Shown in pieces: positions 130 to 37,600 of a stretch of DNA of 64,000 nucleotides. The stretch's first letter is position 1, and each line of letters starts with the position of its first letter. The stretch spans positions 310,001 to 374,000 of the forward strand of contig NW_021832374.1 of NCBI RefSeq assembly GCF_006345805.1, read 5' to 3'. The notes under the pieces were generated by a model. The model was not told where the DNA came from, did no database searches, and saw nothing but the letters and a program-made list of their open reading frames with translations. A program made the translations under genes and the position numbers. This stretch comes from Octopus sinensis (taxonomy: Eukaryota).

Positions 130-935
130 AGCCATCTTCTCACTGGACCCGCACATTGCCTTCCCCATGAAAAGGAGTGTAAACATTTCAAAACGGCTAT
201 ACACGCTCAGCTGCCTGCCATGCTACTCCCATCCTGGAAACCTCCCTAAAATCGTCCACGGAAGCAGTTCTGAACATCGCCTTCGACGAAATCAGTTGGA
301 CGAAAGACAAACTTCCTGTCACGTTTGGAGGGATCGGTCTCCCAAAGACCTGGCGCCGCATACTTACTTCTCTTCAGTTTGCAGAAGCCGTCAGCTTGTC
401 CAAGAAGTTCTACTTCCCTTCAACGAACTTTCCTTGGACTTACCGGCTGATAACCTGCAAAAATTTTGGACCTCCGCCAAGCTGGCAACTTCTTCTGAGA
501 TGTGCAGACAGAGGGACTGGGACGAGATCTGGGCAGCACACTCCGTCACCAAGCTACAGCCCTTATTGGACCAACAACACCTGGCGTGCTTGGTTTCCGC
601 AGAACATAAATCAAGTGGCGCGTGGCTCGAGGCCTTTCCGTGGGCATCAACGGGCTCGTTGTTGGATGACGAGACCCTCCCGATTAGAGTTGCTCTCCGA
701 TTGGGACTTGCCATCTGCACGCCCTCTCGTGCCGCCGGAGCACTCACGAAGCACTCAACGACTTCATCTCAAGAGCACTCAATGCTGCCGGTTTCCCGAA
801 TGTACTCGAACCAGTCGATCTGGACAGGGGAGACGGCAAGGGCCCCGATGGGATGACAACCTTGCCATTCCGAAATGGCAAATGCCTGTCTGGGACACAG
901 ACACTTGGTCCTTATCGGCGATGCATGAGGATCCT
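130..935 (+). mobile_element. CRE-like (RLE) non-LTR retrotransposon fragment, degenerate
   Basis: GC-rich island translating to SSGAWLEAFP...[17 protein letters not shown] and later [19 protein letters not shown], matching the other CRE-like copies in the window; frameshifts and deletions present. Confidence 0.8.
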
Positions 936-1254
936 CTTGTTGAGACAGAGAATCTCTGAATCTCTGAAAACTATCCGTTTGACTGATATCTAACAATTCT
1001 CTGGTAATGATCGCAGATCGAGCTCGTCTTTCCTCTCGGACTCTTTTTGTATCTATTAAAAAAATGTTTTCAATTCAAAGTCCCTCTTAGGTTGCAAACC
1101 TATCGACAATAAAAAAGTCTACTGTTTAAAATTGGATATAAAAATTGGCTCGCAATAAAAGAATTTCAAAAAGCATTTAAAAAATTTATTAACACAAATT
1201 TTTTTTTTGAAAAGTTCCACTTTATTCTAAAAAAAGAATTCGGTCAAATGTTCG

Positions 1255-1775
1255 AAAGCTTCATGGGCGGGAAGCCGACGCGATCGAGAAAGAATTAGAG
1301 CGTACTATCGCAAGGGATATCCGCTCGAAAAACCATCTCGATTCGCGGGCGTCGCCTGTGATAGCCGACATGCGGGACCCGATCTCCTGAACAAAGCTGA
1401 TTGCCTTACTGCCCAAGGAACCGGAAGTCCCAACCGCGAATGAAAGGAATTGGAACTTCTCCGTAAGTGAGGAGTACTTCCGCATCTTTTTGCATTCCGC
1501 GGTTGTGACAATAGGTCCAGGAGCGGAGGCGGACATCAGCAGGTTCTGAGGCGAGAAAGAGTCCACACACGTGGCATCCCAGGCAAGAGGCTTCCCCCTG
1601 TTGAAGGGAAACACAGTGATCCCGTCAGGCATTTTTCCGTCCCCCCGATCGATCCCAGAGGGTTCAAGCAGGGAGGGGATTCCGGCCATTTCCAGGGCTC
1701 TCCTGATAAGGTCGTTAAGAGCCGCGTGACGCGGGATGCGGCCAGCACTGCGTCTACACGATAGAGCGTGCAAAA
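1255..1775 (-). mobile_element. CRE-like retrotransposon 3' fragment (zinc knuckle end and PD-(D/E)xK endonuclease)
   Basis: ORF 1261-1773: CRRSAGRIPRHAALND...PDGITVFPFNRGKPLAWDATC...ERISLAIVRSNS. Confidence 0.85.
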
Positions 1776-2339
1776 TTAGATTTGACTGAATTTCATTAAA
1801 TTAATTTATATTACAAATAATATCGTTTTTTCACACTTGAGAAAAAAAATGGTCATCTCATCAGAATGTTGCCTATCCCCACGGTCTACCCGAACAGGTT
1901 GGAGTAGTGAAAGAAATACAACCTCATCTACAGTTCATTTCACGATGTCATTGAACAATGCATGTCGTATAAACCTCCAAGCACTATGCATGAACGAGAG
2001 AAAATAAGCATTGATAGTCGTAATTTTTGAAACATCTTAGCATCTTTGATTTTTCAATTAAAACAGGCTTTAGTTTGTGATTCCCAGACATATTTGCACA
2101 CAACATTACAGATACCCGATCCTTAAAATCTTTATATCTTTCAAACTGAGTCTTTAGGGGTATTCACTGTATATTAAAATCGTTTTAATAAAAGCTCGTA
2201 ATTGATCTCGGTATGGTAGTATGTAATCACATGCTAGCGTGCCTTTGCTGTAGTTAGACAGGCTTTAATTTAAACAAAATAAAGTAGTTACGGAAAGCCT
2301 TCTATTAGAATATCTCAACATGAAATAATGGAATAAAAT

Positions 2340-2575
2340 TTTCTAAGACTTCTGATTTTTATAATTAATAAATTATAAAGGAAATAAATTGAAAGCAAAA
2401 CTTCAACAAACGGTCTGGAAGAACAAGCATCAAAAAAATACTTCGTTTGGAAGCAACTTTATTGTGTCTCCTGAGATAATCGCTGATTAAAATGTTTATT
2501 ACACTGAGAAACCAAATTTTCAACAATTTTTTTCTGGCAATGACTCTATAGTGCAAACAAATTACTATCAAGTTA
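2340..2575 (-). mobile_element. Heavily deleted R4-like retrotransposon remnant
   Basis: ILISDYLRRHNKV matches MLISDYTRRHNEIV (4308 copy) and LNSDYLRRHNEVV (33999 copy). Confidence 0.4.
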
Positions 2576-2984
2576 GTATCAAGTTACTAAACTTCGTTTC
2601 GTAAGCCATTATTTTTTTGATAGTTAACAACAACAAGAAGCCCTGCCGCAAGATGAGAACGGAATGTTAACATCTCGCTTGTGCCAGCCACATAAGATTA
2701 AAACAGAGAGAGAACATGTTATTAGGAAACTAACTAATCCAAAGGAAGACGACCCGAACGAAGACATGTGTCTCTGCTAAATCTATTATTTCTTTTCAAG
2801 TGTGGCTGAAGTAGACATTCGGTTCCGCAGTAGTATCACTGATGACGGCATCACTCGTCAATCCTAGTTAGTTTTATTTTATTTTTTTATTTATTTAATT
2901 CAAGAATCACCAACAGTTAATTAGGGTAATATTAGGTAATTCCAACATCCTCAAAGTTTGAAAATACCTTTGCGGTCCGAGTTA

Positions 2985-3245
2985 TTTTTATTTATTTATT
3001 AAAGACCAAACACGGGCAAAGCCAGTTAATTATAGTTATTCCCGTGATCGCCGATCCAAACGAGGGAGATCCTTCTGAAAGGTTCGATCCTGCCCGCATG
3101 ATCGGCCTGAGACGACGATGTCCCAGGGTCTGAGAGCTAGAGGTCCTTTTTCGGTAGGCATTAAGTGCCTCCTGAGCGTTGCCATATCCGAATGGAATTT
3201 TCCAACTGACATGGTGGACCCCATAACGCCACGCTAAGACCGGAA
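2985..3245 (-). mobile_element. Probable LINE 3' end with (TAAA)n tail
   Basis: GC-rich island ending on the minus strand in TAATAAATAAATAAAAATAA; no domain recognised. Confidence 0.3.
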
Positions 3246-3690
3246 GGTAAGAGTTATATGATTATTTGATATATTTTGATAGTTATATGATTATTATAAA
3301 TAAATTCAAGAAAAAATTTTAATTCTATTATAATAAAATATTCACACGTTTTTATTTGTATTTTGTTTTGTTGTTGCTTATTGTTTTATTTGTTTAATTT
3401 ATTTTCTTGTATTAATGGTTAATTTTGTATTAAAATTGATTAAATATATTGTTGGCTTACAGAATTTCTTATAATATTTGATATTTTGTAATTGTATTGG
3501 TCTTATTTTTGCAATGATTTAATCTTTTTTACATTTTAACTATTCAATACATTTTTTGACTTTTCTACAAAACCTTATTTCTTGACGATTTCTATATTTA
3601 TTTAAGAAATAGATTATTGTAAAATTGAAAGAAACATTCATTATTAATAATGTCAGTTAATAAATTCAGAGAAGAGATTGATTTGAGAAA

Positions 3691-3800
3691 TCAATTGAGG
3701 AAGCCCGCTGCCTGTATGGAAAGCGAGTTCCCTCGGAGTATGGCTATTCCGATCCTTTGTCTTAGCCAAACTCCTTCACGAGGATCATTTTTCTTTGTGG
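3691..3800 (-). mobile_element. CRE-like 3' terminal fragment
   Basis: NDPREGVWLRQRIGIAILRGNSLSIQAAG, the C-terminus shared with the other CRE-like copies. Confidence 0.65.
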
Positions 3801-4299
3801 CGAGCATTGTTAAGAAATAAGGAAAACGCCGCAACGCGTTTAAACCAGTTTTTGTTACGCCCGTGTTACTAAAGTGGCGATTATGAAAGGAAGAGTCCTT
3901 TTGTTTATTTGTGACTGAATGACCTGACAATGAGTAAAAGCTTATTTTCAAGCATCCGGGATTATCTCATAAATGTGATCGATAAGTTTATTTAATATTC
4001 AAATAATAATTCAAGTCATTAAACTGACATTAGTGTGGTATTTTAGACAGCTAGACACTTCTGGCAGTCTGCGACATATCTTTGATAAAGGGTTTTATGG
4101 TCTGTGCCTTGCATATATCCACAGTGTGGTGACCATACGATCAACGAATCTGGATTTATTGATAGTTGTTGTTTTTGTATCAATTCCCATCAATAAGACT
4201 CTGACAATCTCCTTAAATTAATTCGGTCTATTCACAATCCTATTCCTTTTTTTTTTCTAAAATTAAGTTTTATTATCCACAATTTTGAAATTTAATTAA

Positions 4300-5320
4300 T
4301 TAACTAATTAACTTTCCTTTTCCATATTAGTTTGCTCCGCCAAGTTTACTCTCGGAATCCTCTTCCCGCTATCTGTTCCCACTTCGGAGTTGTTTCCTTC
4401 ATCGGCGGAAACTACAGAATCTCGCCGTCTCTTCACCGATTTCCGTCCTTCGTCAAATGAGTTACCTGAGGTAGACATATTTTCGAAGCCAAATTTGTGT
4501 TCTACTATCATGCTTTCCATTGTTTTTTTCAAACCAACAGTCTGGATGTATGCTTGCACACTTTCTTTGATTTTAAGAAGGTCCATATATTTTCTGAAGA
4601 ATGTAGAGACTATCCCATCCCACGTGAGGACAATCGGTACAATCTTTACCTTAGCCTTGTGAATTAATTGTAATTCACTGGCTAGAATGTCGTATTTATG
4701 CATTTTTTCCACTTCCACCGATTTCAAATTATCTATCGAGGTAACACCCACTTCAATGATCCATATCAAATTTTCCTTCTTGTCATACAGGAATATATCA
4801 GGCTTGTTATATTGTATTTTTAGTTCAGTTGGAATTGTAGTATCGACCCGAATTTCCGCAGAGCTATTCGACATTATACACTGCACGGAGTGGTTTTTCA
4901 GTCTCTTGGACTTCTTCATTCCAAATCTCCGACACAAGTGCATGTGAACACACCTCACAATCTCGTTATGCCTTCTGGTATAATCTGAAATTAGCATTCT
5001 ACTGCATCGCGTCGCAAGATGGTCCACGGTTTTAGGCGAGGATTTACAATGTGGGCATTTTTCATCAGAGTTTCTGAAAAAGACGTTTCTGTCTTGAAGA
5101 AAAGAGAACATTGCCTCAGATTTAGGAGATATATTCCCTTTCTTTAGCCATGTTGAAGATGTTGGGATATCAAAAGTATTATTCTCAAGCGACTCAAATA
5201 GCTTCGAATGCAACCTTTTCTTTTTAATACTAAGCAACAGTGACTCTATCTGCAAGTCACGTAGTGATTTAGCAATCTCATCGAGTGTGGTTGTTCCATA
5301 TTTACAATGCAACAATCCTA
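4300..5320 (-). mobile_element. 5'-truncated R4/Dong-like RLE retrotransposon
   Basis: ORF 4308-5315 with CCHC knuckle (CPHCKSSPKTVDHLATRC) and RLE motif (KPDIFLYD...IIEVG...K); homologous to 33999-34910. Confidence 0.85.
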
Positions 5321-5573
5321 TTAAAATTTAAATCGTCATTATTGAAATTATCATAATGTACTGGTATTTATCGATTTCAAATAACACAACATTTACATTT
5401 GTTTACTCTATTTATATTCTCAAGCCTACTCCACCACCCTACAAATATGATGGAATAATCGCCAGACTTTTTAATTAATTGCACTCATTGAAACAAGTAT
5501 ATTCTCGAAGTACGAAAAATATTTAATTAAAATGGGGAATAAGTTATACACGAATTAATAAAGAGCCTGGAGG

Positions 5574-6290
5574 TCAGCTCAAAGTCGCCGCACTGCGTAT
5601 CGAGTGGCAGTTTCCGCGGAGCACTGCGACCGAGATTCGCTGGAAGAGCCAGCTCGTCTCCCTCCGGTCGTTGGTCTTCTTGCCGATTCTCCTGGCAATG
5701 TCGGCAAGAAGGCGAGTCGCAGACCTGCCGACAATTCCAGATGTTTCGAAGGCGAGGGGGACAAACTCGTAAGAGTCCGAAATATTTCCATACTTCGACC
5801 TCTTAGCCTCCTCAGCCTGAGCACTGGCGGAACCCGGGTTAGTGATGGACTTGAGTAACACCGACGCGGAGAACGAGTCAACACAAGTTGCGTCCCAAAT
5901 CAGGGACTTGCCTTCCCTGAAAGGGAAGGTAGTCATCCCGTCAGGACGCTTTCCATCACTCCGGCAGAGACCGACTGGCTCTAGAGTGGAGGGGAAACCT
6001 GCCGACTCTAGAGCCCTTTTCACGACGTCATTGAGGTGAGTGTGGCGAGGAATTCTGCCAGCACTCTTCTTGCACGAGAGGGTGTGCAAACCGTTCGGAG
6101 AGATCGTGGACCCGCACCGGCATGGGTGGGGCTGACAGATGTCCAGGCCCAAGCGTAAGCAGACACCAATCCGTAAGGATTCGTCGTCCAAGAGATGTCC
6201 CGTACTAGGGGTAGGGAGTGCATTGAGCCAGTCTCCCGTATGCGGCTGGCAAGCGCAGTTGAGAGATGCCAGTTGGACTTTTGACTTCTG
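5574..6290 (-). mobile_element. CRE-like retrotransposon 3' part
   Basis: DWLNALP...LLDDESLRIGVCLRLGL, then CRCG...HTLSC and RPDGMTTFPFREGKSLIWDATC. Confidence 0.85.
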
Positions 6291-6329
6291 TGATTTAAGA
6301 TTTTTGACATCGAATTTCTGTGATTTCCG

Positions 6330-6900
6330 TTTTGGTTGTGTTCACAGTGAGGAACCATTTTCCAAGCTCTGCTGGGGCAACAAACATAACAGAGAAATCG
6401 GCCTGAAAGATGTCAGGTCTCCTCTTGGTATCCAGGCTTCAGTATCGGTCTTATTAGGGCCTGTTTTCATATTGACGGAATCACATTGTTGTTGATTGAA
6501 TAGTTGATGATAGATGTTAGGAACCTGACTCTTTCGACGCCAAAGTTTTTTAATAGACTGACCGGATTTTATCCGGGCCGTGAGAATACGATGATTTTGT
6601 GGAGTGCAAGGCAAAGGTGAGCAGAGCAAGCTTTCTTAGCTGGTGTGGAGTGGGGTGAATATTTTTGTGGAGTGGGGTGAGCAAAGCAAGCTTTCTTAGC
6701 TTTTCCCGATGTTGGACTCTGGACCAAACGCAAGTGCGGAACGGACGGGGAACATTTGTAAGGAATTTAATCGGGGTGATGCGCTTCTGGTTGCTAAAGT
6801 CTTGGTCTTTTGACAGTTGGTCCTGTTGAATGGCTAAGAAGACCTTTCCACCTTCCTGGTGGTCAAGTGGGCTTGGAATAATATTGTTCAATTTGGAAAT
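6330..6900 (-). mobile_element. Degenerate APE-RT LINE fragment containing a short tandem duplication
   Basis: IPRGDLTSFRPISLLCLL is the motif that precedes RT domains; GGTGAGCA(G/A)AGCAAGCTTTCTTAGCT occurs twice in 6617-6701. Confidence 0.4.
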
Positions 6901-6904
6901 TGTC

Positions 6905-6965
6905 GTCGTTTGAGACTGCGAATGGCAGCCCGGACGTCACCCACGGCTAGTTTGACACAAACACG
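6905..6965 (-). mobile_element. CRE-like internal fragment
   Basis: Reverse complement AAACTAGCCGTGGGTGACGTCCGGGCTGCCATTCGC closely matches 16748-16783 (KLAxGDVRAAIR). Confidence 0.55.
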
Positions 6966-7019
6966 ATCAGTCAGGGTGTCCTCCTGTGAGGGGTTCCGTG
7001 CGCCAGTGGGACAAAACTG

Positions 7020-8900
7020 ATTAGACGAGGTCATGCTTTCCAACTATTAGACGTGAGACGTTGATGAAGGAAGTAAGACATTTGGAAACTTGTATCCTTG
7101 TTGACTTTGGAATGCGAAGGGGAATTTTCAAAGAACTTCGAAAGCAGGACAGTTTGAAGAAGAATGAGTTGACGTCCAATTGATGAGAGACTACTTTATT
7201 GAAAAATGGGTACTTTGCCATACACAATAAATGCTGAAGACGTCCATGTTTCCTCCTTTTTAACCATTAAACCCATCTGTTCCACACCATAAAACACATC
7301 CCGTAAGAACATCTTCATGTGAGTGGCAATGTCTGATAATTCTCTTTGCCTTACTGCTTCTGAGTCACCAGACACCAGTTTGTATGTGACATTCTCTCTA
7401 TTCAACGCTGTATTCGCCCTCGTGTCGTCATTTACAGTTGGCTCAAAAAGTCATAGCACCACTTAATAAATTTTAGTATTTTACGTTTTTACCCATAAAA
7501 TATGAAGTATTTTGACTTTTAATTATTTTTTCAAAAATTAAAGCATAACTCACTTTAAAATTTGAACGAACCTATATTTTTGTACTAAAAATTGACTTTT
7601 TTAATTCTTAAAAAAATATGCCGAATAAAATGAGGCATTAAAAAATATCTATCAAAAAAGATTAAAAAATTGCTCATTTTAATTATTCAAATGTATTGTT
7701 TTTATCTGTAAAAAATCCAGTTCAATTAAAAAGACAAATTTGTAGGATACATCCTGCAAGATCCCTCTCTCCATGTTCACTTCACCAATCTCTTTTTGAT
7801 TAAATCTCAGCTTGATCTTTCATTTCGTGACAATTTCCTTGATAAAATCCACAATCCAATGGGGAAGGCCGGAGTTATCGAGGACTTGATACAGAAACTC
7901 GTGATCGTAAGTCAAAAGCCTTCTTTACATCAATCCAGGCAGAAGGCAAATTATTCCCTTTTTGTTGATGGACACATTGGTTGAGAAATGCCTGCTCTTT
8001 GGCTCCTTGGCACATTCTTCTTGTCGCTGATCAAATTGTATGCTTCAATGTAGTTCGTCAATTTTCTGTTCACACATTTTGTTACAAGTTTATATAGATT
8101 TGACATGCAAGTAATCGGCCTCAGGTTCTTGGGTGAGTCACAAATTTTATTTTTGGGAGTAAGATGGGTAATCCCTGTGTAGAACCACTCACCAGGTGTG
8201 TACTTTCCATATATGATATTCGCGACTTTCTTACAAAGGTCATCGTGGACCGTAGTAAACTTTTTCAAGAAAAAATCGTATACGTCATCGCATCCACAGG
8301 CTCTTCCATTTGGCAGCTGATTAATGATCTCAATAATGGTGTCTTTTCCAAAATCAGCAGTTGTGTCCTCGGCACCAGTCACCCAATTATCCAATAAAAT
8401 CGAGTCCCCTACGGGCTCATGTTTTACCCAAATACTCTCCCAGAATGAGAGACACTGACTCTGGTCAAACATAAACTGTGTATTCTTTTTCTCAGTCAAG
8501 TTTCTGTAAAACGTTAAGTTCAAAACACATATTGTCCCTCCGGAATTTTTCCCTTGTTTCATGGGTTGCCAATTTTTTTGCAACAATCCTTACCTCATCC
8601 TGGATGCAGGTGACAATTCTAAATAAATCTCCTTTTTTGGCCTTCCGGTATCCATATTTGCTCAAAATGTCTCTCAATTCGTCACTGAATGATTTTCTCG
8701 TTTTGTCATTATTAGTTAGTGGTGTTACCAACTCGAGTTCCTTCCTAAGTTTGTCAAGCTTCGCGTTCATAATTCCAATCCACTCACTTTTTTACCGACT
8801 CGGTGGGTCAATGCATCATATGCTCGTTGGCCAGCATAGAGGATGTCGGCAATGTCATTGAGATTAGCCGGTTGATTTTCTTTCATAAATTTCCCTTAGT
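7020..8900 (-). mobile_element. R4-like retrotransposon, degenerate RT region
   Basis: FYRNL, ACGCDDVYDFFLKK, LRPITCMSNLYKLVT and AWIDVKKAFD...ERGILQ parallel the element at 35062-36866; stops and frameshifts. Confidence 0.8.
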
Positions 8901-9278
8901 GGTCTGAAACTTTTCATTGAACGGCCTTGTTATATGAGGCCATTTACCGCGAGGAATCCTTCCAAATCTTTGTCTGGCAGAATGAACCACTTCTGTGGCC
9001 CACTGAATCTTATCGGAACTTTAAATTTGGCAATGTAGAAAATTACTTTATAAGTTTTTATAAAAAATTCTATTGTAGTAATGTTATTTTTATGAAAAAT
9101 AAATGTCACTTTCGGTTAGCGTGGCAATACTATTTGTATTGACAAAAGTCGGAATGCACCGAGGATGTGAAATCAGGAATCACATTTGCCAATATTGGAC
9201 ATGGGAGGCAATTTATATAGAAGAAGAAGAATATGGTTTATTTAATACAATAGGTCCAAAAGAAAAGTGGCCGAGGAA

Positions 9279-10890
9279 TTAGAGCTTAGGGGGCGTGATA
9301 ACGAGAGCCACGAAGGTCTCAACTTCGGTTTTGCCCCAGGAGACTGTCTTATCTCCCTCAGCGAATTCGAGTTTTTGCCAGGATCGCGTCAATCGTGTCA
9401 ACACTCCGCTCATGCAGGTCTTCCAGCGGACTGCTGAGCTCCAGGCCGAATGCCAGTTTGATGGCAAATCGTCTGGTTTTTTCGAGTTTGGCGATTAGAA
9501 GGTCCCTTTCATCAGTTTGGTACCAGCCCTCCGAGCCATAGATTATTAGTGGCTGAACACAAGTCTGGTAGATGTGTAGAAACGTTTCTGCGCTTAGACA
9601 AAAACGCCTTAGTCCTTTTAGGATTTTCGCTCCTTGTTTCCGCTTTGCATGCACATGGGGTTTGTATGACCCGGTGGGGTCTATAGTTACTCCCAGGTAA
9701 CGTAGGTTCTTCGATATAATCAGGTTCCCATAATCCTCGAAAGTCGGTTTTTTTGTCACGACCCATTGAAATCCAACAAATGGTACTTTTGTCCAGAGCG
9801 AGATTCAAGCCTTTACCATTGCACCAGATTTCAAGTTCCTCCAAGTACGGTTCTAGTCTGCTCCAGGACAACCTTCTTCTGTGTCGGGGTCCCCACATCG
9901 AGACATCCGTAACCAAGATATCGTCCGCGTAGATAATTAGTCTGCTCGTAGGAAAATGTGGTTTCGGGACGTCGGCCAGAAATATATTAAAGAGCAAGGG
10001 GCTGAGAACCGATCCCTGAGGAACACCTCTCCTCAGATTCACGGCCTTCGATAGCAAATTTCCACAACGAATGAACGATTTTCTCTCGCACAAGAAGTCC
10101 TTAAGCCATCTGACAGTTTTTCGCCCAGCACCCAACTCCGCTACTTTATCTAACAACCCCAAGTGCCAGACACTGTCAAAGGCCTTGCAGACGTCCAGGC
10201 AGACCGCCGTTAGGCAGGCTTTATGGAGTTTGGCCCGAGACAGTTCTTCCTCAAGAAGCGAGAAACAGTGACCGGTTGATCGACCAGGTCTAAAACCCCA
10301 CTGTTCCTCCGCGAGTATATTATTTTGTTCCACGTAAGCCGATAAATGATTGAAAATAATTCTTTCCATTATCCTCGACGTTGTGCAGATAAGGCTAATT
10401 GGCCTATAACTTCCTGCCTGCGTCTTTGGTTTTCCAGGTTTTGGGATCATTCGGACGATTGTTCGTTTCCAGCTAGATGGGACGTGACCATTGTCCCAAA
10501 TGGCATTGAATAGTTTCACCAGAATACGAAGCAAGCATCCGGGTGCCTTCTTGAACACCTCCATAGGGATAAAGTCAAATCCAGGAGCGTTGTTCTTGCA
10601 ACCTCTGATTGCTTCGAACGTCTCTTCCGTGGTTATTTCCCTGCACAAGAGTCCATCCAAAACAAGTTTTGAGCGGGAATTTCGGGTCGACTCCTCAAAT
10701 ATTTTCAGAGGCAGGATAGACGAAGGGTCCACCTCCTGAATCCCTGCTAGCTGCTGGCGGAAGACCTCCGGGACTTCCTCAGTAGGAACAAAGCCTCCAT
10801 CCACCGATTTAAGAATGATTTCTTCTCCTTTCGCCTCCGTCCCGTTCATTATTTTGTATAGTTTCCAGAATATTCGAAAGTTGATCAAAA
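9279..10890 (-). mobile_element. APE-type LINE, RT region (5'-truncated)
   Basis: ORF 9512-10888: PGFDFIP, YRPISL, QWGFRPGRS, DVCKAFD, GVPQGSVLSPLLF, YADD; continues after a frameshift with YLGV (9358-9759). Confidence 0.85.
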
Positions 10891-22986: not shown

Positions 22987-24342
22987 CAGGGGTGCGCAAG
23001 CTTTTTGGGTTCGGGGCCGCATAGCATATTTTTTTCCTTCTCTTCCACGGCCGCACATTTTCTGCATTATTTTTTCGATATTAATATAGTAATTTTTTTT
23101 AATTATTAAAAGTGACCGCATAAGTTGCCCATTGTCATCGAGACCGAATGAGTTCTTGGACAGGAAATGCTCTCGTTCATCAGGAACATCATATTATTAA
23201 AATAAATAATTATTTCATGGACAAAAGATAAGAAAGAAGGAAAGTTAATTAAAAGAAATGTATTATACAAGTTATTCTAATGACGGCCAGGATCTTTGGT
23301 ATTTTTTGCGAGCTTATTGAAATCCACTGGTAGGGTAGATATCATTATGCGCAAACATGACTCTACGTTTGCATCCGTTATCCGAGATCTATATTGACTT
23401 TTTAAATATTTCATTTTGGAAAATGTAGACTCACATAAATATGTGCTTCCGAATAAAACGAGAATATTTCTTGCCATTTCACGTAAATTTGGATAATCTG
23501 TCGCTGATTTCCATACATCCAACAAATCTTCGCTTTCATTAAATTTATTTATCAAAATTAAATCATTTTTTAATTTCAATAATTCAATTTGAAATTCCAA
23601 TGGCGCATTCTCAATCGAAACATTATGTGGTTCTGCAGTTAATTAAAGTTTGAGTTCAATTTTTTTAAATTCGTTAAATCGCTCTTCAAATTGTTTCAAA
23701 ATATAATCGAATATAGTATTAAATGTATTTGGTGTAAGATCGTCATAATTAATTATTTTGTCATCAATAAGATGTTTGACTTTTTGAGAATGAAATAATT
23801 CATTTTTTTCTATGTGAATCTTCAGTAGGCGGCATGTATCCATAAAATCGTTAATTTTTTTTATACATTCGACAAATTATTTGGTCTTTACCTTGCTAAG
23901 ATATATTCAAATTATTGATATGAACAAAGTGCTTGTTGGTGAAATGAAAAAGAAAATAATTGTGTTTTAAAAAATTCAAAATAAGTAAAAAAACGATAAA
24001 AGAAATAAAATCGGAAAATATCACAAAAATGATGAAATTTCAAATAATTTAACTATTAAAAGAAACTACATCCCAAAATATTCCTTTGAATCCAATTAAA
24101 TATATAAATAAAGGTAAACCAAATAAAAACAACAGCGGTACATAATGCAAATAAATTAAGCCGTTTATGAAAATTACCTTTAATAAAGGTTAACCATTAT
24201 ATAAAAATAGAATTTTATTTAATATGAATATTTTTAATTATTATTTAGGGTTTTTCTTGATTAATTAACACTATGAGCATTATATTTAAGATTAGTTGCT
24301 CGATGACCTAATTGTGCCCACGGCCGCACTTGCGCACCCCTG
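22987..24342 (-). mobile_element. Internally deleted hAT DNA transposon
   Basis: 14-bp TIRs CAGGGGTGCGCAAG / CTTGCGCACCCCTG, 8-bp TSD GTTTAATC on both sides, hAT dimerisation domain YPNLREMARNILVLFGSTYLCESTFSKM (23277-23600); empty site at 42134-42141. Confidence 0.95.
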
Positions 24343-24850
24343 GTTTAATCGATATTAATTGATAACGAATCATTCAATAAATGGGGTGCGTTTACCATCT
24401 AAAAAATTATAAAATCATTTTAATAACAGATGTTTGGATTCTACTATTCACATAGCAACAAAAAGACAACAAATTTCTTTCCCATCGGTAAGTGTCACCT
24501 GACTTGCTCCGAGTGGCTATTGAGCACGCACAAATCTATTGCTTACATTCGTTACTTTTGCTCCCTGGTGACATTAAATCAAATTCAAGACCGAAAGAAC
24601 ATGAACATTTTCTTTCCATCATGCAACTGAACTTTTATGGCATTCATTTTCGGGGACGAGATACAATTCCTATTTTTGATAAGTTCGTGGATATGGAGGG
24701 GATATTTGCAGTGGATGTACATATATTTTTAAGAAAGTAGCCTCTAATGAACAGTGGTAAGAGTGCTGCCGTCTTTGAACGCACATTTTGTTTCTAAACA
24801 TGTGTCACTTTCAGTAATAAGTGGACAGTCGCTGTAAAATTAATACACTA

Positions 24851-25113: not shown

Positions 25114-25590
25114 CTACAAGTGTCCCAAGACTAATTTGACCCACTGTAGATGTGTTGTTGTTGAGTGCTGTGGTCGGAAACCATGTTGTGACTTTGAGAG
25201 AGTGAGGAAAGGGTAAATTGATTTCAGGACAAATTTTTCTAGGATTTTTGATATGACAGAGATAAGTGAGATTGGCCTGAACGAGGCGGGGTCGCAGGGG
25301 TCCTTATTGGGCTTCAAAATTGGAATTTTAATAGATTTTTTCCAGACCATAGGTATTAGACCTGAGTTTAGCGATGTTTTGAATATATCCGATAGTGCAA
25401 TCAACCCATTTTGGCCAAGATTTTTCAGATGGTATATGCAAAGACCGTCGGGTCCACAAACGTGAGAATTCTTAGCGTTTTTGATGAGTTGGCTTATTTC
25501 AGAAATCGATATAGTGATTTCTGGAGAGGGGATGTCCTTGTGACTGTAGTAACTTTTATAATGTGAATACAGACACATTTTCAAGTTTAA
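25114..25590 (-). mobile_element. Ingi/Vingi-like LINE internal fragment
   Basis: GPDGL...WKKSIKIPILKPNKDPCDPASFRPISL...SQHGFRPQHSTTTHL, homologous to 28500-28850. Confidence 0.8.
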
Positions 25591-28500
25591 GATATGTTTA
25601 ACAATCTAATTTTATCATTACAGTTCCATCTCAAATAATACGATTTTTAAGTTCCCAAAAGTCAACCGTACGCGATCTATTATGTATTTTAAATTACTTA
25701 CTGTATAGGCTTTTTTCAAAACAGAAAATGTCTAAATTTACAAATAGGTCTCAGTCAATAATGTATAATGTATAATTTTTTTATACTTAGATATTCTCAT
25801 ATTAGGCCCGAAAATAGAGGGCTTGAGAAAAGTATGGAAATAGACACAATTTGAAAGAATACTGCAACATTAGAAAAGAAGAAGCATATCGTCCGTTAGT
25901 TTACTTATAGTATCCTTAATCAATCAATATGATATGCAAAGAGCAATCCATCCAATCAAATATTCGATGTCGCTAATTTACTATATTTCCTTGTTTTACT
26001 TTTTATCTTTAATAAGTTTCAATTGCTACATACAGTAGTCACAATTAAATATACGATCACTAAAGATACATGTGTAGTACTTGACTCTATAAAATGATTG
26101 TTAATTCCACAAATGGTGCTACTTTAGTTTTCTTGTATTTAAATACCTGAATTTAATAACCTGTAAAAAAGAGTTTAGTATTGAGTAACTTTACAGTAAC
26201 ATGCAAATAAATACAATTTTTGTGCTAATTAATATCATTCAACTAAACCAATATTTCTCAACTATTATTGTAAACAAATGTATTTTCATAGAAAATCTAG
26301 ATGAGAGCAAAATTCCGAATTTTTAATCATAAAAATATGTATCAACATTCGGACATGTAATACTAAAAACATAGGAAGCATTGATCAATTACTTATTATA
26401 AAAAACAAATAATTTGGTGAGCAATTGAAATCGCACTTAATTAAATATTTGGATGCTACTAATTAATTAACACGGTTATTGATAATGCTCCGCACTTTCG
26501 CAATTAATTAGTACCATATATTAGATACAGGAGTCACAGTACGTACAAAACGTTAACGTGGATTACTTTGATAAATTAACTAACTGGTCCAAGGTTCCCA
26601 GCAGTTCTTCCAAAGCAAATACATCCTCACTTTGACGGATTCTGATATACCAGCTGCTCTACAGGAAAGATTGGAGGAAGGCACGACTTTGATTGTGATA
26701 GAATATTCGTCACTTCAGTTTCTCAGTTCGAATGCTACTACTGGGATATACAGAAACAATAAATTGTCCAATCATTCATACGTACGATTGATGTTTGACT
26801 AAACACTCGACGAAAGAAGACCCTATAATATAAATTTGTATTAAAGTTTATTAATTTTAATATAAACTAATTTTACTAACCAATAATTATTTCATTACGG
26901 TCAACATAGATATAATAGATATACTATCGCGCTCTATTTGTTGGTTTATTAATTATTTATTTTGTTATAGTGAATGGAGAGTAATATACTGTGGACTACT
27001 CACTCTTTGGTGGACTGTATAATAAAAAGAGACCCAGAAAAAGAACCGAAATATGAACCGAAATATACTCCTTTCATCAATCTTATTATTTATTTATTTA
27101 TTTATTACCCCCGGCCCCTTCAATTGAAGGAAGCCGGTGGCTAACAGAACGTTAGGGCAATGTCGGACGCTCCCAAAGATCCCCGATCGTGATCCGGTGT
27201 TCCGAGGAAGTAGAAGGCGGGCCTGGACAGGAGAAAAGGTCGTTGAGGGAATAGGAAGGGGTTATTTCACCAAGACCGATTTTTATGCGATAATCGTGTA
27301 GGCCAGTATGGTGGCCACAGCGGAGACGAGCCAAGTTCACTCGGGCTTCTCTTGAGAGGGAGGATTCGATCTTATTAATTGGCGGCGGAAGGCGTCCCAG
27401 AAGCTTGTTTATTCCAAGACATCTGATTGCCCTCGTAGCCACCAGGTCGTGAATCCCCTTCTGGTTAATGTCCGGAGGGGATCGTATAAGCTTGCGGACT
27501 TTGTCCGCGAGGGTCGGAACTATTCTCCTGTTGTTAGTGGAGTGCCAGAGGAAGTAGCCAGGGTGATTTAGGGTTCGGCATTTGTCAAGAAATTGCAGCC
27601 CGAGCATTTCAAAATGGTCACTGATTGGGAGGATTTTCGATTCCCAATGTAGGTGGTCGGTAGGTGTCGTTTTTAGACAGCCGGTAATAATTCGTAATGC
27701 TGAGTTTTGAGTTCTCTGAAGTTTTTCAAGGTTTGTATTAGATAAGCAGGAACCCCAAGCAGGGATGGCGTAGTTCATAGTTGTTCTAATAAACTGCTTG
27801 TATACAGTTGTTAGACTTTCCTTATCCTGCCCAAATGAAGTCCCCGCAATAGCTCGGAGCACATTGAGTTTTTTCTGGGATTTTCCACAGATATATGAAA
27901 CATGTTTCGAGAAGGACAAACAGCAATCAAATATCAGACCCAAGATTTTGGGGGATTTTTCAACTGGGAGTGGAGTGTTGTCTAGGAATAGTTTAGGCTC
28001 TAAGTTGAACTGACGGCGGTCAGTTGTGAATAGCGTAACAGATGATTTGGAAGGAGAAGGTTGAAGAAGATTGCATTTCAGCCAGGACGAAAGAGTGTTC
28101 ATGTGTTCCTGCAGAAATCCAGAAGCGGTGATTATGTTTTGGTGGCGGGAGGCAAAAATTAAGTCATCAGCGTAGGAGAGGAGTAGAGTATTATTGTTCG
28201 TCGGGATATTTGACAGATGTAAGTTAAATAAGGCAGGTGAAAGGACCGAGCCTTGGGGAACTCCGTTAGGCAAGTATTTGTAGCGTGAGTAAGAAGACAT
28301 GATTGTGGTGCGACCAAGACGCCCAGAGAGAAAAGAGAGTAGCCATGACTTTATTTGGTGGGGGAATTCCGTATCGGTTATTTTCCTACACAGAACGTGT
28401 CTTGACGTTCTGTCAAATGCCTTTTCAATGTCGATGGATGCAATAATTGTTCTTTGAGGTGGCTTATGATTGTTAAACCCATCCGCAATGAATTGTGTCA

Positions 28501-30179
28501 GTTTTGAAAGATGGGTGGAAGTGGAATGCAAAGAACGAAAGCCATGTTGAGATTCAGCAAATGGGAGGAAAGGTTTTATGATGCTCAATACAACTCGCTC
28601 TGTTATTTTTGAAACCACTGAGATCAAAGAGATAGGTCGAAAAGAGGAGGGGTCAGAGGTATCACGATTTGGCTTTGGGATAGGGATGATGGTAGATTTC
28701 TTCCAAAGCATAGGAACCAGACCATGGTTGATCGAGTATTCGATTAAATTGGTCAGAGCCAGAAAGCCATTAGGACCCAGATTTTTTAGGTGGTGGATGG
28801 CAAGGCCATCAGGACCTCTGGCGTTAGAATTCCGCGAGTTAACAACAAGTTGCCTGGTAAATGATTCTGGGATGTTAATATAGTCAGTAGAATTGTCATT
28901 TGACTTATAATGTGATTTTCTTACGAAACGGAGATCCTTTGGGGTAGGAAGGTGACTGATTTTTGCATAATGGCGAATTAAGATGTTGGCTTGATCCTGG
29001 AAAGATAGGACAGACTTTTTGGTCGAGATACCGGTGGCATGTGAGAGGGGACATGTTTGCCTCGTGTGAATTTTCTTGAGGGTTCTCCAGAAAGCACGGG
29101 ATCCAGTATTTGGGGTTATTGAAGTGATAAAATCATTCCATTCGTCAGTTTTATGTTTCTTGATTAATTCGTCAATTTGTTTGTTGATTTCTGCTAGGGA
29201 TTCTCCATTTCCATTGATAGAAGTCGTCGATTTGATCCTCCTTCGTTTTTTGAATAGTTCAATGATAGGTGGGGGGAAGTGGAGGCCGTGATTTCGGATG
29301 AAGCCGCGGGGAATAAATTTTTTGTCCGCAGAAAGAAGTGTACTAGTAAAGAAAGCAACGGCAGCGTCAAATGATTGAATGGAGGAGCAAGAAAAATTAC
29401 TGAATATACGTTCAGTTTCACTCCTGAACGAGTCCCATTTCCACGTTTGTAGTTAATGTAGGTCTTCGTAATTCTCTTCTTTACAGGGTGATGGTTTATT
29501 TTGATTAGAATAGGATTGTGGTCCGTTGGTAGGTCGTACAGAACTGTCCATTTGGCGTCGAGGGCGATGTTTGGGGAACATAAGGTAATGTCAGGAGAAG
29601 TGTTTGAATCTCCAGGTCGCATTGCACAGCGGGTGTGTAGAAGAGGGTCGTTTAGAGTGACCAATTCTTCCGCATCCGTTGTGATTTGCTGGCCACGTTT
29701 GTCAGTTTTGTTTGTGGATAACCAGAGAGGATGGTGGGCGTTGAAGTCGCCACATAGAATACAGTTTTCAATTGAAAAAAGAGGCAGTAAGTTCGGTGTA
29801 TAATTGGGAGCACATGACGAAATCGGGGGGATATATGTGTTAACAACAGAGTAACATATCTTGTTAATGTTAATTTGAATAGATGAAATTTCGGTAAATC
29901 GATCATTAGTTAAGAGAGATTCAATGTTGGCAGTTGAGTCTGCAAAGGGAATGGCCTCGTGAATGAGAGTAATGAGACCACCGCCAGGCTTTCCAGACTG
30001 GCGGTCACGACGAATGGTGGAATATCCCTTAAAACGGGGGGTTGGGATTTTGGAGTAAGTTTGGTCTCTTGAATAAGAGCTATATCAATAGAGTTCGTGT
30101 GTAGAAAGTAGCGTAGGTCATTGCATTTCTTGGAAATCCCGTTGATGTTCAATTGAAGGATGGTTAGTGTTCTAATAGG

Positions 30180-30250
30180 CTCAGGTCCAGGGTTTTGTTC
30201 CACATCTCCACACCGAATCAACAATAGAGTCAGGGAACGTAAGCTTGGCG
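30180..30250 (-). other. 2A ribosomal skipping peptide motif
   Basis: SLRSLTLLLIRCGDVEQNPGP fits the D(V/I)ExNPGP consensus directly upstream of the APE domain. Confidence 0.85.
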
Positions 30251-30309
30251 CTCGTCCCGTAGCCACTACCAACCAAACCGTTGACAGGTTGGTTGGCAAG
30301 GGGGAAAAA

Positions 30310-30381
30310 TTGGTTCTGTTTGTTGCTGATGAGAAATCAGCATCCAATCGTCTCCACGAGAAGGTGAACCACATGACGATC
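30310..30381 (-). ncRNA. Candidate HDV-like self-cleaving ribozyme at the retrotransposon 5' end
   Basis: P1 GAUCGUC/GACGAUU with a first G-U wobble starting at element nucleotide 1; P3 UUC/GGA; L3 ACCUUCUCGU; GG after P1; P4 UGCUGAU/AUCAGCA; P2 pairing is weak. Confidence 0.65.
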
Positions 30382-31279
30382 TTCATCAATCTTATTAAAA
30401 AAATGTCTTCAAAACACCAGAAATACCTCGACTCTGTAACCTCCCAATTGGAGTTGATAAATTCCCCTTTCGATACCACTCTCGTTTCTGTACTCGAACA
30501 AATGTTTCGAACAAACTCAGTAAATAGTTGGGGAGGACTGGTCATGCTATTTTTGTTAGCACATGATTTGGCGGAAAAGAATCCCGAATATAGTGGACTA
30601 ATAAAAGATGTATTCATCGAGCACATCAATCGGGTGTATTCTGGGTGGGTGTCCAGGCAGGGAGGATGGGTTTATATTCTGCCATCATTTATAGCACAAA
30701 CTATTCGTGGCTAAATATTTGGCAGTGGAGAATACGTTTAGTTTGGTTGGGTTTCTGTCATCTAAAATAACCAGTTTGTTTGTCAATTAATTATTATTGT
30801 TTTATTTATAAGATCAAAGTAATTGACATTTAATGTGGCCAGTTCGATCGGTTAAATCGATTTGGTTTTATAAGATAGTCATGTCCTATCGATTCTAAGG
30901 ACGATTTGGATATTGGCATTTGTAAATATTAATTAATTTTATGTTTCGTGGGGATGTTGCTCTTTGTCTATTATGGTCTATAAATACTTAATTGCTGTTT
31001 AATTTTAATCAAGTCGTTTAATAATTGTTGTAATAAATACTTCCAACTGTTTATTTATAGATATTTTAATAAGGTTTTAAAAAGAGATATGGCTCGAAAT
31101 GAAAACAGATTTTTGTGCCTAGTAGAAATCTGTCTTTTTCAAATAAAGATTAATATTATATAAATAGTGTTTATTGGAACTATATCTACTATAAAATTTT
31201 TATAATTAAAATAATTTTTGATTCTTATTAAAAATTTAATAAATTCATAAATTAGTACCCTTATGTGTGTAATTTTTTA

Positions 31280-33959: not shown

Positions 33960-36900
33960 CAATAATAACTTAATAGTTAATCAGAAACTAAGCAGATCTC
34001 ACTCCAGCTCGCTGATATCCACTCTCCTTCTCTTGGAAGAAGAGTCTACTTCCAGCTGCCTCTTACTCCCCACTACCACATCTGATTCAACCATTGCATC
34101 TTCTTTAGCATTCATTGGGTCGTCTTCATTTTTGCATGCCATCTCCACATACCGGTTGGAAGCAGAAGCGTATTCTTCACCAGATACCTTCATTCCGTGC
34201 TTGTGTTCGATCATCATACTCTCGAGCGTTCTTTTCAGTACAACGGATTGGATGTATGTCCTCGTTCCTGCTTCAATAGATAATTTCTTCATATAATTTT
34301 TGAAGCATTTCGAGACAACTCCATCCCATGTCATAACCACAGGAATTATTTTTACTTGACAGCTATACAGAAGCGAAAGCTCACTTGCCAATAGGTCATA
34401 CTTGTGACACTTTTCAACCTCCACTTGCTTGAGGCGATCCTGTGAAGTAATACCCACTTCAATTAGATTTATTTCGTTTCTGACTTTGTCGTGGACAAAG
34501 ATATCTGGCTTGTTATATTCTACTTTTGTTTCGGTGAGGATTGTAGAATCAACCCTGATTTCAACTTTTCCCGTCGACAGTGTTGACTGAACAGAATGTC
34601 CCTTCAATCGTCTTGCTTTTTTGAGTCCATACATTCGGCACAAGTTAAGGTGAATACACTTCACAACTTCGTTGTGTCTCCGGAGATAATCACTGTTGAG
34701 CATTTTACCACACTGAGTAGCCATGTGGTCAACAGTTTTCTTGCTTTTCTTACAATGATTGCATAATGAGTCAGCGGATGCAAAGAACAAGTTTCGATCT
34801 TGCAAAAGACAATACAATGCTTCGCTTCGTGGCCCATTATTTCCATTAGATAGCCATTCTGAGGATGCAGGTAAATCAACATTAGGTTCATCCACACATT
34901 TGAAAAGCACAGAATGTAGTGCTTTAGAACTAATTTTCTTTTGTAAATATTGTATCTGACTGGACTTTAGAGACTCTATAGTAATACTCTTCTATCAATA
35001 ATTGCATATTTGGAGGATAGAAATCCTGCGATCATAGCCAAATGCCATTTATTCATTTTAATTACACGCAGAATCCCCGCCCTCCGTAAGCATATAGTTG
35101 ACATATTTTCCAGACTCGTAAGGAACTGAAAAGCATTAGTTCACTTTTGAAAGTAACTGATGAAAGCCCTCTTCCAAGAGCCTTCCGGTTTAAATACAGT
35201 CTCTCTTTATTTGCAGGTTTGAGATGTAATCTGAGCGACGTAAGCAATTGCCGTATTTGTCTGTCAATATCATCAAATTCAGAAGGTTCAATATTGATTA
35301 GCCCAATATAATAATTATATAGTGACAATGCATATTCATTTATAGCACGAAACAGATTCACAGAGTTGAGTTTTGTTTTCGATAGCATAGTTATCCTCTT
35401 CTTAACATTCTCAAAGATAGAGTCCATAACTCTATTCTTAAGAACATTGCTTCCACCATCTTCAAGTACACCCAAATACCGATATCCATTGATTCCGTCA
35501 ATAGTCTTACAACATGATAATGATTCCAAATTAGACGCTGATTTTTCTGAATTCATCTCCAAACCAACAATTTTAAAAAATCCGTTAACAGCTTCCATCA
35601 TTTTGAGTAAAGTGTCTTGTTTGAGAGCAAATATTTTTAGATCGTCAATAAATAGCAAATGATTAGTAGAATATGTTAACATATTGGGATCTTCCTGGTT
35701 AATTTCAAGTTTTGGAAACACGGAATTAAGGATCCTGCTTAGAGGATCTAATACCATAACAAATAGTAAAGGAGACAATGAGTCTCCCTGTAAAATTCCT
35801 CGGTTTAACTTCACTGATCCAATTCTTCTACCTTCCATATGCAGCTTTACTGCCCACTTCTTAACTACGCTCTTCACAAAGTTTACGATCCAAAGCGGGA
35901 TTCCAGAACAATCCAAAACGTGAAACAAAAAATCATGATCAACTGAGTCATATGCTTTCTTCACATCGACCCAAGCAGAATAAAGGCCATTCCCGTACTC
36001 CTTGTTCAAACATTGGTTAATGAGAGCTTGCTCCTTGGCGCCTTGACAATACTTCCTCGTTCCAAGTTGGTTGTCTGAAATTAGGCCAAATGCCTCGACA
36101 AAATCAGCCAGTTTTACATTAACACATTTGGTGACAAGTTTATACAATGTCGGCATACACGTTATAGGACGTAAGTCCTTCGGGGTCTCACAATCATCTT
36201 TTTTAGGAATCAAATATGTTATTCCAGTGTAAAACCAACTTTCAGGCATGTACTCTCCATTAATTATTCGGGTTATCTCGTGACACAGAAATCCATGTAA
36301 TGACTCCATCTTCTTAATGAAAAAGTTATATATCCCATCACATCCACATGCCTTCCAGTCAGGAAGATACTTAATAACATTTCCAAAAAACTCTTCCGTA
36401 AACTCTGGAAGCATATGTTCAGCACAAGTAGTTCGTTTTCCAACAACGTCATAAGATTGAGGCCTCCATTTCTCTCGCTCCAGACTTTTTGCCAAAAAGA
36501 GACACATTCTTCATCATCAAATCCATACAGCGTCACTTCCTCTTTCTTTGTTAAGTCTCGATAGAATCTTTTTCGATTTAATTCAAAGCACTGATTATCC
36601 TTACGAAATTGCTTCCTTGAATTATGAACTTCTATTTTCTTATTGTTAATCCTAATCAGGTCTTGCAATAATATCTGAATCCTCGACAGCTCACCTTTCT
36701 TAGTTTTCTTATACCCATAGCGACAGAGAACATCCATTACCTTTTGCTTTTCAGATGGAGGTAGTGTTTGATTGGAATGGGAATTAACAATTTCCAATTC
36801 TGCAGATAATTTTGAAATTTTCTTTTCAATATTTTCTACCCATGTGCTCTGTGCTTTGTCTCTCATGGTTAGAGATAAATACGCACATTGAGCAGCATAT

Positions 36901-37600
36901 AGAATATCAGAAATGCTATTGATATCATTAGGATGATTATCTTTCGTATATAATATATCGCCGAATTCAATCCTGTCAATATATCAGTTTTCAAATATTT
37001 ATTTTGAATTTTTGGAGTTGGTTTACGTGAATCCCTTGGAATCGATTCAATATTCTTAATTTGTATATTCAACTCTTCTAGACACTTTCTAAAAGTGGAA
37101 ATTTCTGAGCTCTCAAGAAATTGCTTCTGATGGCAATTGCTTCCATAATTATTATCCACTCTCATTGGTTTAACCATTCCTTTGAGTTGACTGAGACTTG
37201 CACTCTTCGAGAATTTTGAATTAAACTTCTCACGGATAAGGTTCCATCCACCTCTTGGTATCCTCCCAATTCTTTGCTTCGTGGCATAAACAATCTGAGA
37301 CACCCACTCAGCTTCAGAAACACAAATAGCATCATCGATAATGGCCGAAAGGGAATGCAAGTTAGTTGGGATAGTAGGATTCCCAGCAATTGGATTGTCA
37401 TGAATACTAGTCCTTGTGCTGTTATCCAGCCCCAGAGACGACACTCCTGCACTTGTTATGTTATTTTTATCCTTTTTCGCAGGAAGGCCCCTAGGATTCG
37501 ATTTCCTCATATCATTAGGAACGGACATGCACAACACCACAACAACTAATTCTTTCCCCTTATCATTGCATAACAAAGTTTATTTTAAATAAAAAAAGTA
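33960..37600 (-). mobile_element. Near full-length R4/Dong-like RLE retrotransposon
   Basis: Consecutive ORFs 36869-37576, 36273-36866, 35062-36507 and 33999-34910: Myb-like N-terminus, RT (DVKKAYD, GILQGDSLSP, LFIDD, YLG), CCHC knuckle, KPDI...IEVG endonuclease; broken by small indels. Confidence 0.9.

Follow-up and report, generated by a model that had tools for sequence, protein, structure and literature searches.

The window (the whole stretch of 64,000 nucleotides that was analysed) is very rich in transposons, with a GC content of about 0.27–0.46. A non-LTR retrotransposon was delimited on its minus strand with the following features, in which nt numbers count from the first nucleotide of the element.

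27089–30381, minus strand: non-LTR retrotransposon of 3,293 bp, with one ORF (leader, 2A, APE, RT) and a (TAAA)n 3' tail
30382–30397, no strand assigned: upstream copy of the TSD, 16 bp, 100% identical to the downstream copy
27073–27088, no strand assigned: downstream copy of the TSD, 16 bp, 100% identical to the upstream copy
30183–30212, minus strand: 2A ribosome-skipping motif CGDVEQNPGP (nt 170–199, with NPGP from nt 188)
30268–30296, minus strand: stable hairpin CCAACCAACC...GGUUUGGUUGG (nt about 86–114), seen in the MFE structure of the flank plus 120 nt

The minus strand read from 30381 is GAUCGUCAUGUGGUUCACCUUCUCGUGGAGACGAUUGGAUGCUGAUUUCUCAUCAGCAACAAACAGAACCA, and rereading confirmed this sequence as it had first been noted. 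The 3,293-bp element is bracketed by a perfect 16-nt direct repeat (minus-strand TAATAAGATTGATGAA), the TSD. The base after the downstream TSD copy is A and nt 1 of the element is G, which places the 5' end of the element at G30381; the coincidence of the first helix with the TSD-defined end, as claimed in the earlier note, was thereby borne out. The RT domain was recognized by Pfam RVT_1 (E 3e-33) and the APE homologues by PF03372/PF14529. The ORF runs from an AUG at nt 8–10 through a 62-aa leader, 2A and the APE endonuclease domain to RT, and in the frame-2 translation this AUG, which is also J1/2 of the fold described below, is the sole in-frame AUG upstream of 2A. With its N-terminal GD(V/I)ExNPGP, TSD and simple-repeat tail the element has the make-up of a 2A-bearing APE-type element. 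An in-frame AUG also happens to be supplied by the TSD at 30384–30386 on the minus strand (AUG AAG|AUC GUC AUG), two codons 5' of the element's own AUG, so that translation reading through from the flank would run into the element ORF as well, and 2A would resolve it.

The copy is young, since its TSD is perfect, it lacks stop codons and its sole defects are two frameshifts (at about nt 370 and 960); given this youth, its 5' end should be close to that of the active master sequence. The insertion site is AT-rich and apparently non-specific. A blastn search of the window for a second copy of the element returned only the element itself, and no close relative above 48% identity was found in the protein database. 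The CCAACCAACC/GGUUUGGUUGG hairpin lies 15 nt downstream of the candidate ribozyme, within the leader-coding region; in L1Tc, the region downstream of the ribozyme attenuates the ribozyme (PMC3185411).

Other traces of retroelements were noted in the window. A decayed fragment of a similar element is located at 24540–24700 on the plus strand; its translation (...SLLLLPGDIKSNSRPKE...IMQLNFYGI...) resembles a mutated 2A motif and, after it, the beginning of an APE domain. The region upstream of this fragment showed no HDV-like fold, and an 8-bp helix CGCACCCC/GGGGUGCG is found at 24333–24390. A second, different RT fragment (25114–25584, minus strand; RVT_1 E 8e-6) lies about 1.5 kb downstream of the element, with similarity at the protein level only. 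Several other retroelement ORFs with RT domains occupy 167–10888 and 33999–37576, and C-terminal domains with a PD-(D/E)xK-like motif occur among them (e.g. at 4308–5315 and 33999–34910).

The first 71 nt of the element contain a candidate HDV-like ribozyme, the parts of which were assigned as follows.

30311–30381, minus strand: entire HDV-like ribozyme candidate (nt 1–71), the sole strict-descriptor match in the window
30375–30381, minus strand: P1 5' strand GAUCGUC (nt 1–7), pairing with nt 30–36; predicted cleavage 5' of G30381
30372–30374, minus strand: J1/2, AUG (nt 8–10) in the frame-2 translation
30366–30371, minus strand: P2 5' strand UGGUUC (nt 11–16), pairing with nt 66–71; present in the 82-mer MFE and in the scanner matches
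30353–30365, minus strand: P3 and L3, consisting of A17 C18 C19, UUCUCGU (L3, nt 20–26) and G27 G28 A29
30346–30352, minus strand: P1 3' strand GACGAUU (nt 30–36)
30343–30345, minus strand: G37 G38 A39, with G37 and G38 as putative P1.1 partners of C22 and U21
30324–30342, minus strand: P4 hairpin UGCUGAU-UUCUC-AUCAGCA (nt 40–58, stem 40–46/52–58)
30317–30323, minus strand: J4/2, A59-C60-AAACA, with C60 (window 30322) as the proposed catalytic cytosine
30311–30316, minus strand: P2 3' strand GAACCA (nt 66–71)

In our descriptor scans the order of a nested double pseudoknot (P1-P2-P3-L3-P3'-P1'-P1.1-P4-J4/2-P2') was present from nt 1, with a P1 of 7 bp, a P2 of 6 bp and a P4 of 7 bp. The 7-bp P1 opening on a G-U pair, the 7-bp P4 and the C-containing J4/2 that had been described from reading alone were all recovered by the scanner. 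The first pair of P1 is the G-U wobble typical of HDV-like ribozymes, G1-U36, nt 1 of which coincides with the TSD-defined end, and P1 also appears in the 71-mer MFE structure. Since nucleotide −1 (A30382) is no partner for G37, an extension of P1 that would displace P1.1 is excluded. L3 (UUCUCGU) begins with U and has G as its sixth nucleotide, and the pairs C22-G37 and U21-G38 are possible for P1.1. A P3 of 3 bp is canonical for HDV-like ribozymes. In the register with a 7-nt L3, P3 consists here of C18-G28 and C19-G27 with an A17×A29 mismatch, and a P3 of 3–5 bp can form in a different register at the expense of P2. The catalytic C is placed at the first position of J4/2 (PMC10879173); C60 stands one nt past P4 with A59 between, and a U, G or A intervenes in the same way in L025 and in the L001 family (see below for these relatives).

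Descriptor scans were run on both strands of the window (128 kb). A loose HDV-like descriptor matched six loci in the window compared with 4.3 ± 2.4 in dinucleotide shuffles (about 3e-5 per position) and was thus not enriched. The strict descriptor required CC/GG as the inner P3 pairs, an L3 of 7 nt in which the first is U and the sixth G, P1' directly after P3', and a C 0–1 nt past P4 followed by 4–8 nt containing AA. With these limits, which were drawn from the relatives and set after the candidate was known, so that the figures are optimistic, the real window gave a single match over both strands, at 30381 (minus), whereas dinucleotide-shuffled versions of the window gave two loci in 51.2 Mb and shuffles of the 5' 400 nt of the element gave none in 8 Mb, a margin of several orders of magnitude. 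The descriptor search proposed as a check in the earlier note thus singled out the same site.

Rfam gave no match in the whole window at the gathering score, nor in the 501 nt around the site at E<=10. It was equally without matches to the canonical-looking ribozymes of the relatives; its silence at the site therefore says little, the HDV-family models being too narrow here. The MFE z-score of the site was −0.81, an unremarkable value that is to be expected because pseudoknots are not modelled. As a further control the catalytic C was replaced in the descriptor by decoy nucleotides, which were also satisfied by other registers because the flexible ends of P4 allow these.

Relatives of the element were collected as nine loci by protein look-up (L001–L006 and three further copies of the L001 family) and 80 loci from one metagenome scan, which contained distant relatives only and no sister copies. 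In the protein collection the best match reached 48% identity for RT and about 40% for APE, the relatives spanning 30–48%. Many of these distant relatives have a short leader, a 2A motif and often a PHD finger, followed by APE. The strict descriptor was applied to both strands of the first 86 relative loci (0.59 Mb) and matched eight loci, of which seven are in coding orientation. Among these seven, six lie 182–310 nt upstream of the 2A NPGP, the distance in the window being 187 nt; for the seventh (L001:6124), which is near the end of its locus, no 2A was located. Most of the 2A-bearing relatives examined carry an HDV-like fold 180–310 nt upstream of 2A, with C(C)AAA or CGAAA in J4/2. The AUG falls within P4 in L006 and 50–100 nt downstream of the ribozyme in L003 and L004. 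Three examples are given here.

L003: P1 GGUUGC/GCAACC, P2 GAGAG/CUCUU, P3 GCC/GGU, L3 UUCAUGU, P4 of 7 bp, J4/2 CAAAGC
L011: P1 GGCUCC/GGAGCU, P2 GAUGUCC/GGACAUC, P3 GCC/GGU, L3 UGCACGA, P4 of 9 bp, J4/2 CAAUG
L025: P1 CCCCGAC/GUCGGGG, P2 GACCUCC/GGAGGUC, P3 (G)CC/GG(A), L3 UCAUCGU, P4 not assigned, J4/2 U-C-GAAAUU

The layout of the window site, in which CC, seven nucleotides, GGA and P1' follow one another, is common to one relative only, L025, in which a G×A is found at the outer P3. The presence of this GGA layout in L025 makes the outer P3 position, with an A facing a purine, a subtype feature and not a private mutation of the window copy.

The L001 family comprises four copies (L001, L087, L088 and L089) from one ENA assembly, with unrelated upstream flanks; similarity ends precisely 5' of CUUCCA, whose first nucleotide also opens P1 (CUUCCA/UGGAAG). 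In the three better-preserved copies P3 (GCC/GGU) is intact and P2 has 7 bp, with C-G replaced by U-G from one copy to another; disabling substitutions are present in the L001 copy itself. Exact 5' ends of this kind are the pattern expected if self-cleavage were to set the 5' end of the transposition intermediate.

No ribozyme was found at any setting in L002, which is the closest of the APE relatives that have a 2A, and no HDV-like fold was found in the more distant, 2A-bearing L012, L013 and L016. The latter three share another conserved long hairpin (CACAAUUGGGGAUGCUCUGCAC...GUGCGCAGAG.UACCCCU) upstream of 2A, at L012:520–600, L013:150–210 and L016:150–240. Further observations were made in other loci. 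A second, different HDV-like ribozyme (P1 GGAGCG/CGCUUU, L3 UGCACGC, J4/2 CAAAU) is located at L001:6124–6188, 3.7 kb downstream of the first on the same contig, and presumably heads another element. Members of the same ribozyme family occur at L020:90–190, with a hairpin of ~23 nt inserted in L3, and at L074:122–200, with two mismatches in P1 and with P2, P3, P4 and J4/2 intact. Directly upstream of the ribozyme of L006 lies a near-perfect 66-nt palindromic hairpin (L006:28–93), which gives spurious sub-threshold matches to miRNA families in Rfam.

MAFFT misaligned the 3' halves of the full-length ribozymes, and for this reason a structure-derived, N-padded alignment (A3) of the window and nine relatives was used for pair counts and a covariance model (R1) was built from 5' halves only (P1, P3 and L3) of five relatives. 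Standard pairs occupy 98.1% of the cells of A3, and sliding the partners by 1–3 columns lowers pairing to 28–47%. In this alignment, which was made by the structure scanner and leans towards structure, both partners have changed in 21 of the 25 pairs, among them all scored pairs of P1, P2 and P4, and P3 is conserved; the counts accordingly document compensatory changes and are no proof of structure. Invariant in all ten sequences are the inner C and G of P3, the U and the G at L3 positions 1 and 6, the C of J4/2 and the A two positions later. A sparse conserved core of such a kind defines HDV-like ribozymes (PMC4870747). Independent support for the fold is given by the descriptor enrichment together with the positional consistency in the relatives.

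R1 recovered three loci on which it had not been trained: L011 (33.1 bits, E 7e-6), L009 (E 0.06) and L074 (E 0.075). At the window site it found the expected register with 7.1 bits, compared with 33–40 bits for members, and with Rfam silent as well the covariance-model search that had been suggested did not detect the site significantly. Judged by R1, the window ribozyme falls outside the majority GCC/GGU subtype and belongs to a divergent GGA subtype, with L025 as the nearest structural match. The best R1 match in the window (14.3 bits, E 0.44), above that of the ribozyme site, is at 24725–24766 on the plus strand, where GCC...GGU encloses a 13-nt loop beside a weak AU-rich P1; this match is probably due to chance.

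Three lines of evidence support the HDV-like fold from nt 1 that had been proposed for the element: the end set by the TSD, the statistics of the descriptor scans, and the occurrence of the fold at the homologous position in distant relatives. Nucleotides 1–71 of the element (30381–30311, minus strand) probably hold an HDV-like self-cleaving ribozyme of the retrotransposon's own, and the fold is likely to be a genuine ribozyme derivative.

The internal register of this fold was then compared with the one originally described. By homology the better register is that with P2 at nt 11–16/66–71, P3 formed by C18-G28 and C19-G27, a 7-nt L3, P1.1 formed by C22-G37 and U21-G38, and C60 as the likely catalytic nucleotide. 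The earlier note had paired P3 as UUC/GGA, had let the CC of its L3 pair with the GG after P1 as P1.1, and had pointed to a P2 of only 4–5 bp in an ambiguous register. G37 and G38 were retained as the P1.1 partners, with C22/U21 fitting better on the L3 side by homology. UUC/GGA is a genuine alternative pairing, which is present in the 71-mer MFE and possible in L025, but the CC/GG register is better by homology. A 6-bp P2 (UGGUUC/GAACCA) is available in another register, although thermodynamics does not decide the choice: the plain MFE of the 82-mer picks the 6-bp P2 helix, and in that of the 71-mer (−17.8 kcal/mol) P1 and P4 are accompanied by a helix of 5 bp at 14–18/25–29, which is the UUC/GGA P3 extended. 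The nested substructures containing P1 and those containing P2 each have about −14 kcal/mol, as would be expected if P1 and P2 coexist in a pseudoknot.

A real ribozyme could in principle be active in the register first described, with P3 formed by U14-A29, U15-G28 and C16-G27 (maybe with A17-U26 and C18-G25), a long or rearranged L3, C18/C19 pairing with G38/G37 as P1.1, and a 3-bp P2 (UGG/CCA). Besides the 71-mer MFE, the equivalent helix UCCGC/GUGGA that L025 can form speaks for such an arrangement. It is nevertheless rather unlikely: in each of the other eight relatives L3 has 7 nt, is flanked by GCC/GGU and leaves no such alternative, the 5-bp version pairs G25, which is the invariant position 6 of L3, and it cuts P2 to 3 bp, a length associated with very low activity in a Leishmania SIDER ribozyme (PMC4035085). 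In substructure energy the earlier P2+P3+P4 register reaches −5.6 kcal/mol, compared with −13.9 kcal/mol for the revised one.

The imperfect P3 and the competing 5-bp helix favoured in the MFE, together with the weak R1 score and the position of the start codon inside J1/2, would also fit a fold that is HDV-like by descent in a subtype or copy that no longer cleaves. The structured 5' end would then serve cap-independent initiation, protein binding or a promoter, with transcription start at G1 setting the end; in L1Tc the first 77 nt are both promoter and ribozyme (PMC3383444). Loss of cleavage is quite unlikely, in that the U and G of L3 and the C of J4/2, which are important for catalysis alone, are retained, the GGA arrangement recurs in L025 and is hence no private mutation, and insertion boundaries in related families lie exactly at P1. 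Chance resemblance, in which short 5'-terminal helices happen to fit a permissive motif, could draw on the permissiveness of the descriptors (about four loose matches per 128 kb of shuffles), the z-score and the absence of an Rfam match, but is highly improbable given two strict matches in 51.2 Mb of shuffles against a match exactly at an independently defined nt 1, a distance to the 2A motif that agrees with the relatives, and conserved catalytic-core nucleotides.

With the self-cleaving ribozyme in its revised register as the preferred reading, efficient cleavage by the window copy itself is given slightly better than even chances. For catalysis, co-transcription and the mode of translation initiation we infer the following course, on the model established for L1Tc and R2 (PMC3185411, PMC3383444, PMC3774820). 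The element would be transcribed within a longer host or read-through transcript and would have no need of a promoter of its own. The RNA would fold into the nested double pseudoknot (P1, P1.1, P2, P3 and P4), and C60 in J4/2, with Mg2+ held by the U20/G25 motif of L3, would cut the phosphodiester bond 5' of G1. The released RNA would begin at nt 1 of the element, and each full-length reverse-transcribed copy would thus keep the ribozyme. Translation of this uncapped RNA would start at or near the AUG of J1/2 (nt 8–10) or enter from upstream, and 2A (NPG|P, nt 188) would shed the 62-aa leader, or a host-derived N-terminal fusion, from the APE-RT protein.

It is tentatively suggested, as a possibility that falls somewhat short of even, that a whole assemblage of metazoan single-ORF, 2A-bearing APE-type non-LTR elements carries, like L1Tc, an HDV-like ribozyme about 180–310 nt upstream of 2A. 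The pair would be an ancient two-part 'hitch-hiker module', and in the GGA subtype of the window a switch between P2/P3 registers may also control when cleavage occurs. If this were so, the ribozyme would trim host RNA from the 5' end and 2A would trim host or leader protein from the N-terminus, and the two together would let promoter-less elements exploit any read-through transcript. Two self-trimming devices, one an RNA and one a peptide, would then be linked in animal retrotransposons, and this broader ribozyme-plus-2A pattern in the metazoan relatives is the part most worth attention. The window element offers a concrete testable case of a promoter-less LINE-like element that would define its own 5' end, and the relatives offer a collection of HDV-like ribozymes that covary naturally and escape the current Rfam models.

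Several known systems were compared with the element. HDV-like ribozymes are also said to have been placed by Ruminski et al. in 2011 at R4, R6, SART, Baggins and RTE. R2 (PMC3774820) and the other non-LTR ribozymes share with the candidate the fold, the 5' processing of a co-transcript and an ORF start in or next to the ribozyme; unlike the window element, R2, R4, R6, SART, Baggins and RTE belong to other clades, several of them site-specific, and are without 2A. Perere-3 of Schistosoma mansoni carries twister-variant ribozymes at its 5' end (PMC8501958); in this non-LTR element, as proposed for that of the window, a self-cleaving RNA begins at the first nucleotide and the TSD directly adjoins the cleavage site. 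A twister identity of the Perere-3 type was considered for the candidate and rejected, the conserved blocks (e.g. GUCCCAAGC and GUAAAGGAG) being absent and the Rfam twister models giving no match.

2A-bearing APE-type non-LTR elements of metazoans have been described from the Rex1, Crack, L2, CR1 and Ingi clades (Odon et al., 2013, PMC3708506). These have an N-terminal GD(V/I)ExNPGP directly upstream of APE and a single long ORF, as here, and a PHD finger between 2A and APE, as in many of the relatives found in this work (PMC3708506); ribozymes are not mentioned in that paper (0 occurrences). In the literature found, a ribozyme and 2A had previously been documented together only for the trypanosome L1Tc/ingi elements. 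The 5' ends of L1Tc and R2 are processed by HDV-like ribozymes (PMC3185411, PMC3383444, PMC3774820). L1TcRz/Pr77 of the Trypanosoma cruzi element L1Tc (ingi clade) is an HDV-like ribozyme formed by the first ~70–77 nt, which cleaves 5' of nt +1 (PMC3185411, PMC3383444), and L1Tc carries an N-terminal 2A (PMC3708506). Like the candidate in the window, this ribozyme heads a non-LTR element of the APE type that has a single ORF and an N-terminal 2A, and the part of L1Tc given by published primers (nt ~27–77) has a P3'/P1' junction, ...GGU-GCCAGGG..., that resembles the majority subtype of the relatives (PMC3185411). The window element differs in residing in an evidently metazoan-type, retroelement-rich genome and in its non-canonical P3, and no sequence similarity between the two has been established. 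The analogy with L1Tc appears apt as a functional comparison: an HDV-like ribozyme at a non-LTR 5' end, paired with 2A as in L1Tc, is a known kind of device, of which the window element is a new example with a slightly unusual P3/P2 junction.
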